From assembly GCF_006345805.1 (NCBI RefSeq), contig NC_043001.1:120156001-120220000 (forward strand): a DNA stretch of 64,000 nt, in the 5' to 3' direction. Source of the DNA: Octopus sinensis (Eukaryota). Shown here piece after piece: positions 21,524 through 59,406 of the stretch (position 1 is its first letter; each line of letters opens with the position of its first letter). The translations under genes were made by a program, and so were the position numbers. The notes under the pieces were generated by a model, which was not told the DNA's origin, searched no databases, and was given only the letters and a program-made list of their open reading frames with translations.

Positions 21524-21733
21524 AGTTTAAGTTTATGAATTATATCAATCACATGCGGATATTATTTAAGTAAATAAATTTAATTCGTGACCAGTAAATC
21601 ATAGAGGACAGGTATCTAGTTGTACTGAACAGCTAAGCACACATTTTTGCAATGCATTACTTGATATATTACTTGAATTATATATCTTGGTATCAACATT
21701 TTAAATCCTTGCATCCGGTCTTATTAATATATT

Positions 21734-22085
21734 ACTCTTTTACTCTTTTATTTGTTTCAGTCATTTGACTGCGGCTATGCTGGAGCACCGCCTATAGTCG
21801 AACAAATCGACCCCAGGACTCAATCTTTGTAAGCCTAGTACTTATTCTATCGGTCTATTTCGCTGAACTGCCAAATTACGGGGACTTCAACGCACCAGCA
21901 TCGGTTGTCGAGCGATGTTGGGGGGGAGGCAAACACAGACACACAAACATACACACACCCACACACACGCACACACGCACACATATATAAATATACATAT
22001 ACGACCGGCTTCTTTCAGTTTCCGTCTACCAAATCCACTCACAAGACTTTGGTCGGCCCGAGTCTATAGTAGAAGACACTTGCCG
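21734..22085 (-). mobile_element. SINE (family A)
   Basis: Reverse complement of 41441-41860, including the internal (CA)n. Confidence 0.8.
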
Positions 22086-36900: not shown

Positions 36901-36924
36901 ATGACTGTTGGGGGCTATTCGAAT

Positions 36925-37148
36925 TTATCTTTTTATCTTTTACTTGTTCCAGTCATTTAACTGCGGTCATACTGGGGCACTGTCTTGAAGAACTTTAAGC
37001 CGAATGAATCGACCCCTTATTTTTTAAAGCCTGGTACTTATTCTATCGTTCACATTTGCCAAACCACTAAGTAATCGCACCAGCACCGGTTGTCAAGTGG
37101 TGGTGGTGGTGGTAGTGATGGTTGTGGACAAACATAGACACAAAGACA

Positions 37149-37188
<40 letters not shown>

Positions 37189-37209
37189 ACATATATACGA
37201 CGGGCTTCT
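36925..37209 (-). mobile_element. SINE (family A) 3' part, abutting the LINE at 37208
   Basis: Matches the family A tail modules. Confidence 0.7.
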
Positions 37210-41440: not shown

Positions 41441-41606
41441 AGGCGTAGAAGTGGCTCGGTTGTAAGCAGCTTGCTTACGAACCACATGGTTCCGGGTTCA
41501 GTCCCACTGCGTGGCACCTAGGGCAAGTGTCTTCTACTATAGCCTCGGGCCGACCAAAACCTTGTGAGTGGATTTGGTAGATGGAAACTGCAAGATGCTC
41601 GTCGTA

Positions 41607-41647
<41 letters not shown>

Positions 41648-41860
41648 GTGTGCATATGCTTGTTGTCTGTGTTTATCCCCCAACATCGCTTGACAACCGA
41701 TGCTGCTGTGTTTACGTCCCCGTAACTTAGCGATTCGGCAAAAGAGGCCGATAGAATAAGTACTAGGCTTACAAAGAATAAGTTCTGGGGTCGATTTGCT
41801 CGACTAAAGGCGGTGCTCCAGCATGGCCACAGTCAAATGACTGAAACAAGTAAAAGAATG
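41441..41860 (+). mobile_element. Near full-length composite tRNA-derived SINE (family A)
   Basis: Head with B-box-like GGGTTCAGTCCC, GGCACCTAGGGCAAGTG core-like block, internal (TA)/(TG) microsatellite, tail ending GACTGAAACAAGTAAAAGA. Confidence 0.85.
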
Positions 41861-42468
41861 AAAGATACAGACATTCCAAACGCCCTCCAAATCGAAATTG
41901 ACTTTTTAAAAGTTTTTGTGAGCGTTTGAAGCATACTTCGTAATCAAACGATTGTGTCCATGTCTAACGTTTCATAATTGCTTGTAGTTTCCTGCTATTT
42001 CCCGCCAAAAGTACTGTTTGTGTGAATAAAACAATGAATAAACTACATAATCTATGGAAACAAGCTTGTCTTACCACACATCTACGTGATACACAGTAGA
42101 GAGGCTGCTGTACATCTTTGGTTTCCATGACGTCTAAGCGAGATTTTTTTCTCCTACTTGTTGCAAAGTATTTCGATGGAGACATTTTAATATTGTTTAT
42201 TACTCTTGCTAAACAGATACGAAATAGATTAGATGTGATTTTCGAAAAACGAAATGGACGAATCAACCACGCTGGTGCATCTATATTTATGTTCATACAC
42301 ACGTATACACGCGCGCACACACACACACAAACACACAAACACACAAACACACATACACACACATATATATACACACACACATATACACACACACACACAA
42401 ACATACACATATATATACACACACACATACACATACACACACACATACACATACAGGCACACACACAG

Positions 42469-55519: not shown

Positions 55520-55885
55520 TATGTATATCTTTCAGTCTCTGGACTGCAGCCATGCCGAGGCACTACCTTGAAGACTTTCAGTCGAATGAATCGATGCCTC
55601 TACTTAACTTTTTAAGCCTGGTGCTTGTTCCAGTTATCTCTTATGCTGAGCGGCAAAGCTACGGGGACGTAAAGAAACCAACACCGATTGTCAAGCGGTG
55701 GTGAGGAACAAATATAAACATAAAGACGCACAAATATAAGTATATACATTTATATATACAATATATATATATACATATATATATGCATATATATATATAA
55801 TATATATATATATATATAATATATATATATATTATATATATATATATGTGTATATATATATATATTATATATATATATATATATA

Positions 55886-57312: not shown

Positions 57313-57960
57313 GCCCACAGATTCTACGGACGACACTGTAAACATCCCAGGAGTACGGACTGTGATCTTAAGAGACGTGTGATTTGTGGAAACGCGCGTA
57401 GCGATGCATTAAAAGTTTACAACTTCCATCCAAGGATTATTGTTATCTCTTATTATAAAAGGCAGATTTTATCTGCCTCCCTTTGGGAGTTATAGAAATC
57501 TACAATATACGATTTCTTCAATTACAATTTACCTAGCATTTTTAAGAGTACAATGCATCGCGTCATGCCAGGTCCAGTTTTTAAAATTTAAACTCCAATT
57601 AAGCAAAATTTACAGAAAACTCACATTCTGGTGTGTGTGTCAAATGCTTTTCTTAGTCTGGTTTACACCACACGCAAACGCACACACACAGTGGGCAACG
57701 AATAAAATGAAAGTAATTGACTTACTGTAGTGAGTGATTCTTTCACTCTGCCTCCCACTTCCTCTTTCCACACATAGACACGCAAATATATAAATAAAAT
57801 TGTAAGCTAACGTGCGTGTGTGTGAGTGGGTGTATGTGGGTGTGCGTGTGTGTGTGTGTGTGTGAGGGTGCGTGTGTGTGTGTGTGTGTGCGTGTGCGTG
57901 AGTGTGTGACAGGAAAGTTTTTTACGACGAATATAACACCTATATCCAAGTAGCAGAAAG

Positions 57961-58225
57961 ATAAGACAGTAAGGTGTGATTTGAGGGAGATTTGGCTGCT
58001 ATTTCTACCATGTCTAGCTGCCATGTAGGGGTCTCCCTCATAGGCTCATACATACATATATACATAGATAAGACAGTAAGGTGTGATTTGGGGGAAATTT
58101 GGCTGCTATTTCTACCAGGTCTAGCTACCATGTAGAGGTCCCTCTCATTGACTCATATATATATACATACATAAGACAGTAAGGTGTGATTTGAGGGAGA
58201 TTTGGCTGCTGTTTCTACCAGGTCT
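57961..58225 (+). repeat. Tandem triplication of a ~105-bp unit
   Basis: ATAAGACAGTAAGGTGTGATTTG starts at 57961, 58068, 58171. Confidence 0.92.
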
Positions 58226-58292
58226 GTTAGGCCTTCTCATGTAAACTCAAGCTTTCTCATGCCTTGAACATAAGACCAAAGCAGAGAATGTA

Positions 58293-58500
58293 TTCTTTTA
58301 TTCTTCTACTTTTTCCAGCCATTGGTCTGTGGCCATGCTGGGGCAATGCCTTGAAGAATTGTAGTTTAATGAATCAACTCCACTTTTATTTTTGTAAGCA
58401 TTGTACTTATTCTATCTGTTTCCTTTGTCAAACCACTAGGTGACAGGGATGTAAATAAACCAACATTCGTTGTCAAGCAGTGGTGGAGGACAATCACAAG
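58293..58500 (-). mobile_element. SINE (family A) 3' part
   Basis: Matches the family A tail. Confidence 0.65.
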
Positions 58501-58590
58501 CACAGACACGCACACACACACACATACATGCATACACATATACACACATACATACATACATACATATATATATATGTGTGTATATATATA

Positions 58591-58849
58591 TTGCAGCGTG
58601 GAAGGTGTTTGTAAGCCATTTAAGAAACACACAAAAACCGTTACATTCACTTCAACATTTAAATTTAATTTGCCAAAATATTTTCGTCGCTTTGAGACCG
58701 CGACCTGTTCACTGACAAAAATATCGTGCTAACAGGTCGCGGTCTCAAAGCGATGAAAATATTTTGACAAATTAAATTTAAATGTTGAAGTGAATCTAAC
58801 GGTTTTTGTGTGTTTCTTAAATGGCTTATAAACACCTTCAACGCTGCAA
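58591..58849. mobile_element. Near-perfect palindromic element: 119-bp arms, 21-bp spacer
   Basis: 58591-58709 vs 58731-58849 are reverse-complementary with 5 mismatches counted by eye. Confidence 0.95.
58669..58719 (-). ncRNA. Type I hammerhead fold with G3/C8 core swap
   Basis: UUUGUCA-GUGAACA-G-GUCGC(GGUCUCAAA)GCGAC-GAA-AAUAUU-U-UGGCAAA. Confidence 0.72.
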
Positions 58850-59011
58850 CTGTTTTCGTTCCAGCACACGATCTCAGATCAACTCACTTGCTATGCAAGT
58901 ACATCTCTGTAACTATATATATATTTATATATATATATATATGTATATTGGTAAAAACAGTAAGATAACAAAAGAAAGAAAGAGACCTCAATATTATGTA
59001 AATAGAGGAAA

Positions 59012-59406
59012 TCTTTATATATAAAAGTGAGGTTGTGTGTCTGTCTCCTACGATTTAGATTCATAACTACTCCCACATTTTGCGGTGCAGTTTAACCAAA
59101 ACCGGGTATCTTATAGTCGTGATTCATATCGAGACCGTCTGGGTATTAGCGCGCGTCTACGATGAGTCTACGATTTAAAAAAAAAATTACCATCAATTTT
59201 TCCCATTTTTAATCCATTTTTGACATATATAAGGGAAGTAACTCTCTAAAATTTATTATTAAATCTCAGAACGTAAAAAGCTACAGTAACACCCCTCCCC
59301 CTTTGTGGTTAGCCATATTGAGATGGCTATTATACTTTACATCTCTAAAAATGCTTATATAATTATTTCCCTTACAAACCCGAGCAACGCCGGGCGATAC
59401 TGCTAG
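59012..59406 (+). mobile_element. Non-autonomous Helitron
   Basis: A|TC 5' start (TCTTTATATATAAAAG), subterminal hairpin CCCGAGCAACGCCGGG at 59379-59394, CTAG|T 3' end. Confidence 0.85.

Follow-up and report, generated by a model that had tools for sequence, protein, structure and literature searches.

A 51-nt motif on the minus strand of a 64,000-nt stretch of the Octopus sinensis genome (RefSeq assembly GCF_006345805.1, contig NC_043001.1, positions 120,156,001–120,220,000; hereafter the window, with position 1 as its first letter) is supported as a genuine relative of the minimal hammerhead ribozymes (min-HHRs) of Penelope-like elements (PLEs), with the core pair between positions 3 and 8 naturally flipped from C-G to G-C. 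Taking all observations together, the best explanation, which we regard as highly probable, is that of a PLE min-HHR with a natural G3-C8 pair, of which the window copy is a PLE tail captured by a Helitron. An earlier note, made from the sequence alone, had proposed a hammerhead in which G3-C8 is a natural compensatory swap, and the proposal is supported by the PLE context of the motif, its positional homology to other PLE hammerheads, covariation and the independent recurrence of the swap, as well as by the partial activity that an engineered C3G/G8C PLE hammerhead keeps (PMC11167929).

Structure of the motif

Helix I of the window motif is formed by UUUGUCA (58719–58713) and UGGCAAA (58675–58669), giving 7 bp of which one is a G.U pair. 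It is followed by the core GUGAACA (58712–58706), an extra G (58705) and helix II, in which GUCGC (58704–58700) pairs with GCGAC (58690–58686) across a 9-nt loop, GGUCUCAAA. The 3' part consists of GAA (58685–58683), the palindromic AAUAUU (58682–58677) and U17 (58676). All of these elements, including the one G.U pair of stem I and the coordinate of U17, were confirmed as the earlier note had given them. The core positions U4, G5, A6, A9, G12, A13 and A14 are all present, as is the A15.1-U16.1 pair, and position 17 is U, not G. The canonical identity C3/G8 of the CUGANGA consensus is absent: G stands at position 3 and C at position 8, two bases that are able to form a Watson-Crick pair. The C3-G8 pair was the key finding of the full-length hammerhead structure. 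Min-HHRs are distinguished by an extra base separating 9 from 10.1, a G10.1-C11.1 pair and palindromic positions 15.x-16.x (PMC4209133), and the window motif has the extra nucleotide between A9 and G10.1, the G10.1-C11.1 pair, no loop 3 and the palindromic 15.x-16.x. Both the extra G and a palindromic stem III that has no loop are thus published hallmarks of PLE min-HHRs and not oddities.

The window was scanned with a min-HHR descriptor specifying N3-UGA-N-N8-A with positions 3 and 8 pairable, 0–1 extra nucleotides, a helix II of 5 bp or more, GAA, a palindrome of 4–8 nt beginning with A and ending with U, H17 and a helix I of at least 2 bp. Two matches were obtained, the motif at 58669–58719 and one with a canonical core at 2004–2055; the mean over 200 shuffles was 0.015 matches per shuffled 64-kb window. 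The predicted fold of the isolated 51-mer contains stems I and II and has an energy of -13.2 kcal/mol (z = -2.1). The hairpin formed by the full palindrome around the motif (see below) folded at -192 kcal/mol (z = -33), compared with -13 for the motif, and dominates in context; a short 5' extension of the 51-mer was already predicted to re-pair the hammerhead core. Domain-swapped dimers were predicted by RNAcofold for the G3-C8 variant and for canonical motifs alike, giving no discrimination between them.

Standard searches for CUGANGA would, as the earlier note stated, miss the motif. In Rfam, no hammerhead model matched in the window at the gathering threshold, nor in 58300–59100 at E<=10, where the only matches were to miRNA-hairpin models, far below threshold and reflecting the long hairpin. 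Canonical type-I hammerheads elsewhere in the genome, serving as a positive control, were detected above gathering with 34–48 bits. A search of the related PLE loci L102–L104 at E<=5 likewise gave no hammerhead match, though L104 holds a min-HHR with a canonical core, and membership in Rfam is therefore a weak test for the min-HHR subclass.

The second descriptor match in the window, at 2004–2055 on the plus strand, reads GACAC CUGAUGA a GGCUGG CGGGUAUAU CAGCC GAA ACGU U GUGUU. It gave no Rfam match at gathering. It has no open reading frame (ORF) nearby and is therefore probably another 5'-truncated PLE tail.

The parent Penelope-like element and its relatives

Locus L093 contains, on one strand, an inverted copy, an open ORF of 793 amino acids, a 3' untranslated region (UTR) of 1.1 kb, the motif, and the 3' end of the element in (TA)n. 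The motif is in sense orientation, about 85–130 nt from the element 3' end. In the ORF (L093:2115-4493, minus strand) YVDD and DKSG motifs are visible, and its C-terminus matches the Pfam GIY-YIG family (PF01541) with 23.5 bits against a cut-off of 22.6; a Pfam search with the whole 793-aa ORF gave no match, RVT_1 included. Its homologues are named reverse transcriptase domain-containing proteins, the best being a protein of Octopus vulgaris with 55% identity. The parent is an EN+ PLE, encoding in one intact ORF a reverse transcriptase (RT) followed by a GIY-YIG endonuclease (EN). Several open PLE copies with 97–100% amino acid identity are present in the genome, together with a sister family whose identity is about 55%. 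The position of the motif agrees with the published location of PLE min-HHRs, in the terminal repeats flanking the elements (PMC4209133). The 3' UTR of L093 is swollen to its length of about 1.1 kb by internal (CATA)n and (CA)n microsatellites, which were also noted in the region upstream of the copy at L046.

Public contigs encoding related PLE proteins (43–55% identity) were fetched and the downstream flank of each ORF was scanned. In eight related PLEs the architecture was found again in sense orientation, 70–540 nt past the ORF stop (Table 1), with helices I and II that differ in sequence but stay paired through compensatory changes. The hammerhead reading of the octopus motif is supported by this shared architecture together with the sense position near the PLE 3' end. 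Common to the related motifs are U4, G5, A6, G12, A13, A14, the A15.1-U16.1 pair and H17, and A9 is present in all but that of OctB, a family sister to the octopus G3-C8 family (OctA). In the 75 kb of related PLE loci the descriptor found nothing elsewhere.

For the counting of pairs, 12 motifs were parsed structurally by hand, MAFFT alignments having misplaced the 3' halves. The 3-8 pair was G-C in five, C-G in five, U-A in one and U.G in one, without a mismatch. A15.1-U16.1 was invariant (12 of 12) and position 17 was U or A. Helix II comprised 4–6 bp (5–6 in all but L046), with several pair types at 10.2-10.5; pair 10.4-11.4, for instance, is A-U in OctB and G-C in the family of the window motif. 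Helix I varied from 2 to 8 bp, with unrelated sequences.

Table 1. Positions of features in the window, and minimal hammerhead motifs of related Penelope-like elements (PLEs)
Feature	Position	Strand	3-8 pair	Basis or motif sequence
Minimal type-I hammerhead motif with G3-C8	58669..58719	-	G-C	sequence, 51-mer fold, descriptor, homologous motifs in related PLEs
Inverted copy of PLE 3' end (about positions 9-150 of the 3'-terminal unit), whole hammerhead kept	58591..58730	-		comparison with L068, L046 and L093
Direct copy of PLE 3' end, 5'-truncated at AACAGG	58731..58849	+
Tail of the PLE, on one side only (CTGTTTTCG...CTCTGTAA), extending the direct copy	58850..58912	+
Non-autonomous Helitron carrying the palindrome, 1.96 kb	57446-59406	+		termini, subterminal hairpin, A/T insertion
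Related PLE, L105			C-G	CUGAGGA g GUUGCC..GGCAAC GAA AAUU U
Related PLE, L111			C-G	CUGAAGA a GUCAAC..GUUGAC GAA AAUAUU U
Related PLE, L104			C-G	CUGAGGA a GGAGA..UCUCC GAA AACGUU U
Related PLE, L110			U-A	UUGAGAA u GUUUAC..GUAGAC GAA AGCU U
Related PLE, L102			U.G	UUGACGA a GUUAAC..GUUAAC GAA AAUAUU A
Related PLE, L103			G-C	GUGAACA AGUUC..GGAUU GAA AGCU U
Related PLE, L107			G-C	GUGAGCA AG(U)GCC..GGCUU GAA AGCU U
OctB (O. vulgaris, OX597831.1)	L101:4443-4493		C-G, C9	CUGAUGC g GUCACA..UGUGAC GAA AGAACU U

In a tree of the RT-EN proteins, OctA was sister to OctB, which has C-G (support 96/94), and L103 together with L107 (100/100) was sister to L111, also C-G (89/96). Because each G3-C8 lineage is thus sister to one with C-G, G3-C8 arose at least twice on this tree.

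OctB is present in the O. sinensis genome in 2,373 copies, of which about 88% read CUGAUGC, with C in place of the conserved A9, and about 3% read CUGAUGA (A9). This near-canonical min-HHR with C9 could represent a further natural variant of the core, or else a ribozyme that has decayed. At the O. vulgaris locus the annotation places a multi-exon gene for a 'hypothetical protein' over L101:4001-8283, a region in which a PLE is accompanied by a partial tandem copy and by an inverted copy of 3 kb with 100% identity; this gene model is likely to be an annotation artefact.

The palindrome as a form of PLE insertion

As noted earlier, the motif lies inside a palindromic element; this was confirmed as a palindrome of 258 bp, with arms of 119 nt (58591–58709 and 58731–58849; 96% complementary) separated by 21 nt. 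The 5' strand of stem I and the core sit in the 21-nt centre and the remainder of the motif in the left arm. From the comparison of copies, the 21-nt 'loop' is the inner part of the inverted copy where it adjoins the more deeply truncated direct copy. The latter is devoid of the 5' strand of helix I and of most of the core, and hence contains no complete hammerhead. In the window the PLE is represented by this truncated tail only. In the sister PLE family, the 3' end of the terminal repeat is succeeded by a stretch with weak similarity to the one-sided tail at 58850–58912 (76% over 34 nt, E = 0.024). One-sided tails have been described as a signature of PLE insertions (PMC8557442, PMC11167929), and their origin is treated in the second of these studies.

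At least 1,626 candidate copies of the 258-bp palindrome were found in the genome, the best 40 being essentially identical. An older family, with 2,296 matches to the arm, makes palindromes with variable centres. An unbiased sample of 30 loci was drawn by flank anchor. One of these loci, L046, has a single arm, into which UUUGUCAGUGAACAGG runs straight. At L068 the palindrome is perfect through its centre, so that the whole motif is present in both arms. In 25 sampled copies an inverted arm of about 150 nt and a variable junction were followed by a direct arm of 208 nt bearing a one-sided tail of 58 nt, and most sites were (TA)n. Solo copies with 5' truncation also occur, and the target duplication at L087 is 12 nt.

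PLE insertions have been described as heavily truncated at the 5' end, joined to an inverted copy that is itself truncated, tailed on one side and targeted to microsatellites (PMC8557442). Because the truncation, the inverted copy, the variable centres, the tail, the (TA)n sites and the 12-nt duplication fit this anatomy, the palindrome is a form of PLE insertion, in which the 3' end is joined to an adjacent inverted, 5'-truncated copy of itself. A miniature inverted-repeat transposable element (MITE) or foldback element containing the motif by chance was considered and rejected, given the unequal arms (150 vs 208 nt), the variable centres and the existence of single-arm copies. The fixed terminal inverted repeats and fixed-length duplication of a MITE were not found, the one clear duplication being 12 nt and most copies lying in microsatellites. 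At L078 (G000:C1:14181300-14182000) the direct arm begins exactly at the predicted cleavage product, UGACAAA..., and this junction was considered as a possible trace of ribozyme action; it was discarded because the strands of stem I turn into direct repeats within a palindrome, and a deletion between the two resulting TGACAAA microhomologies accounts for the junction without a ribozyme.

Amplification by a Helitron

Similarity among the copies spans about 2 kb around the palindrome and corresponds to a non-autonomous Helitron (Table 1). Its ends are 5'-TCTCTTATTATAAAAGG and ...CCCG-N8-CGGG-N8-CTGCTAG-3', with a hairpin roughly 8 nt short of the 3' end. In nearly all sampled copies with both ends found, an a precedes TCTCTT... 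and a t follows ...CTGCTAG. The element is thus inserted at A|T sites, for the most part within TA repeats, and leaves no target duplication. Head-to-tail joins (CTAG|TCTC) occur, with arrays at L011, L025, L028 and L018. Within the Helitron, internal repeats of about 107 nt at 57959–58225 differ in number between loci. Upstream of the palindrome a stretch of about 280 nt (58287–58560) has four relatives in the window with 66–73% identity (21733–22001, 36921–37198, 41605–41869 and 55540–55815), and is probably a SINE-like (short interspersed element-like) repeat with a microsatellite tail, also captured by the Helitron.

The window 51-mer has 4,707 genome copies within 3 mismatches, and the core context TTGTCA-N-TGAA-N-AGGTCGC has 6,270; of the first 100 in positional order, 93 have G...C. 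A Helitron that captured one PLE insertion accounts for the bulk of the amplification (about 4,700 of about 6,300 copies). The earlier view of a G3-C8 family amplified in a repeat stands as regards the existence of a PLE family with G3-C8, while most of the amplification is attributed to Helitron capture. That note had asked whether GUGAACA is fixed genome-wide: G...C prevails in the sampled context copies, and doubly changed copies and variants in helix II exist. In the 18 copies with positions 3 and 8 both changed, the combinations were U.G (5), A-U (4), U.U (4), A.A (2), A.G (2), C.A (1) and C-G (0).

Among 28 unbiased Helitron-borne copies, 11 were identical to the window 51-mer and nine carried C11.1->G, which breaks the closing pair of helix II. 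This change, present in about one third of the Helitron copies, marks a Helitron subfamily. It was seen in the left arm only (L043-L045, L049, L050, L057, L061, L062 and L065), where it adds a mismatch to the palindrome. Because of the Helitron termini, the folding energies of hairpin and motif, and the C11.1->G change in nine of 28 copies, the Helitron-borne hammerhead copies are passengers, and the copy in the window is most likely inert and probably non-functional.

Alternative explanations

Several observations weigh against a natural G3-C8 hammerhead. The descriptor was composed after the candidate had been seen, and the Rfam hammerhead models gave no match. The related contigs are from metagenome assemblies; three of the 11 related PLE loci had no motif (L106, L108 and L109, the last two with short or low-complexity 3' flanks), the motifs of L107 and OctB were parsed by eye, and those of L103 and L107 have no extra nucleotide and have A10.1-U11.1. 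The doubly changed octopus copies are pairable in nine of 18 cases, compared with 4/9 of the possible combinations, and thus show no excess of pairs; because inserted copies decay neutrally, covariation between positions 3 and 8 within the genome is uninformative. The C9 of OctB may mean that the strict catalytic constraint is relaxed in octopus PLEs. PLE min-HHRs cleave poorly in vitro (PMC4209133), and hammerhead catalytic mutants left PLE insertion in vitro unchanged (PMC11167929).

The last three points bear on the alternative that is next in probability to our own reading, namely that the motif descends from a PLE hammerhead and has lost cleavage. If retained at all, it would serve a structural purpose at the 3' end, such as being recognised by the RT close to its site of internal initiation, and the G3-C8 swap would in that case preserve a fold and not catalysis. 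This we consider unlikely. It would be consistent with the absence of RNA-seq ends at the cleavage site (PMC11167929) and with the proliferation of Naiad PLEs without canonical hammerheads (PMC8557442), but all other catalytic positions (U4, G5, A6, A9, G12, A13, A14, A15.1-U16.1 and H17) are retained in three G3-C8 lineages whose helices have changed, the swap arose twice, each time needing two transversions that restore a Watson-Crick pair, and the engineered swap retains partial activity (PMC11167929). It is less probable again, though compatible with the preferred explanation, that the relevant feature is the 119-bp hairpin, which if transcribed would give rise to small RNAs of the endo-siRNA or miRNA-like kind, irrespective of how the hammerhead is judged. 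The hairpin is near-perfect and very stable, is present in thousands of copies and has sub-threshold Rfam matches to MITE-derived plant MIR hairpins; these matches are, however, far below gathering (60 vs 200 bits) and reflect hairpin shape only, and the palindrome is already explained by the PLE insertion mechanism. That the hammerhead likeness arose by chance, through a relaxed pattern match in an AT-rich palindromic repeat of the MITE or foldback kind, is very improbable. Such a view could draw on a core that fits only four of the six specified positions of CUGANGA, on the Rfam result, on a fold of the 51-mer modestly better than that of shuffled sequences (7 of 200 as good) and on the dominance of the long hairpin in context. 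It is opposed by the rarity of descriptor matches in shuffled windows, by the sense position of the motif at a PLE 3' end, by the same architecture with covarying helices at the same place in eight related PLEs, and by palindromes that have variable centres and a variable-length duplication in place of fixed terminal repeats.

Proposed mechanism and implications

Under the preferred explanation, a PLE min-HHR with a natural G3-C8 pair, we infer that PLE transcripts spanning tandem or partial copies would carry two motifs. These could pair via the palindromic AAUAUU to form helix III of a double hammerhead, which would cleave after U17. Cleavage would probably be slow and helped by the protein of the element, as reported for other PLE hammerheads. 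In the window, a 5'-truncated PLE tail is joined head-to-head to an inverted copy of itself, a normal outcome of PLE insertion; a non-autonomous Helitron took up one such insertion, of which about 4,700 copies resulted. RNA from the Helitron-borne copies would fold as a 119-bp hairpin, and the motif in them decays neutrally.

For the wider proposition that G3-C8 hammerheads are catalytically competent natural ribozymes which evolved at least twice within PLEs, we put the chances at about even. If it is true, the purine-pyrimidine orientation of the 3-8 tertiary pair is free in nature, and descriptors based on CUGANGA or UUGANAA systematically overlook a class of ribozymes, to which some PLE lineages scored as being without canonical hammerheads could belong. 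The only natural exchange at 3-8 previously known is U3-A8, others having been shown by mutagenesis. A G3-C8 consensus with an otherwise intact core, arising twice, would be natural evidence that pairing and not base identity is selected. Searches in which C3 and G8 are fixed (RNAmotif 'cuganga', Rfam models) miss G3-C8 motifs, with consequences for ribozyme censuses and for the annotation of PLE lineages. The sister families in one genome, one with G3-C8 and the other with C3-G8 and C9, offer a ready system for studying the function of PLE hammerheads.

Comparison with known systems

The octopus motif resembles the min-HHRs of PLEs (Cervera & de la Pena 2014, PMC4209133) in its type-I layout without loop 3, the extra nucleotide, the G10.1-C11.1 pair, a helix II of 5–6 bp, the palindromic 15.x-16.x suited to dimers, its terminal location and its thousands of copies per genome. 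It differs in having the core GUGAACA in place of CUGANGA; the 3-8 pairs reported in that study are C3-G8 and, as the only covariant, U3-A8 (about 1,300 matches in Schistosoma mansoni). With the natural U3-A8 covariants (Perreault et al. 2011, PMC3088659) it shares a compensatory replacement of C3-G8 in a core that is otherwise kept. In U3-A8, however, the pyrimidine at 3 and the purine at 8 are retained and the change is reachable via a U.G intermediate, whereas in G3-C8 purine and pyrimidine are inverted and two transversions are needed.

The same two positions have been exchanged in engineered C3G/G8C double mutants (PMC11167929, in which Martick & Scott 2006 is cited for them). In the Poseidon PAc hammerhead, cleavage is lost with either C3G or G8C alone and comes back in part when the two are combined; the protein of the element was needed for cleavage by the PAc hammerhead (PMC11167929). 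The earlier note stated that compensatory 3-8 swaps restore activity in mutagenesis; in PAc the restoration is partial and protein-assisted. Full-text searches of the open-access literature returned only the engineered variant and no natural G3-C8 hammerhead. Unlike the laboratory constructs, the octopus swap is the consensus of a PLE family and recurs in another PLE lineage.

Canonical type-I hammerheads of the same genome (RF00163), such as that at L031 (GUAC CUGAAGA GACCC AAAC GGGUC GAA ACAUGUGU U GUAC), are similar to the window motif in their short palindromic helix III and in U or C at position 17; they differ from it in the core CUGAAGA, in having no extra nucleotide and in scoring above the Rfam gathering threshold. 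The element around the palindrome is like Helitron-N elements in its 5'-TC and 3'-CTAG ends, its subterminal hairpin, its insertion between A and T without duplication, its head-to-tail arrays, its internal tandem repeats and its captured fragments. This last likeness concerns the vehicle and not the motif, the spread of the ribozyme-bearing PLE tail being incidental to that of the Helitron.
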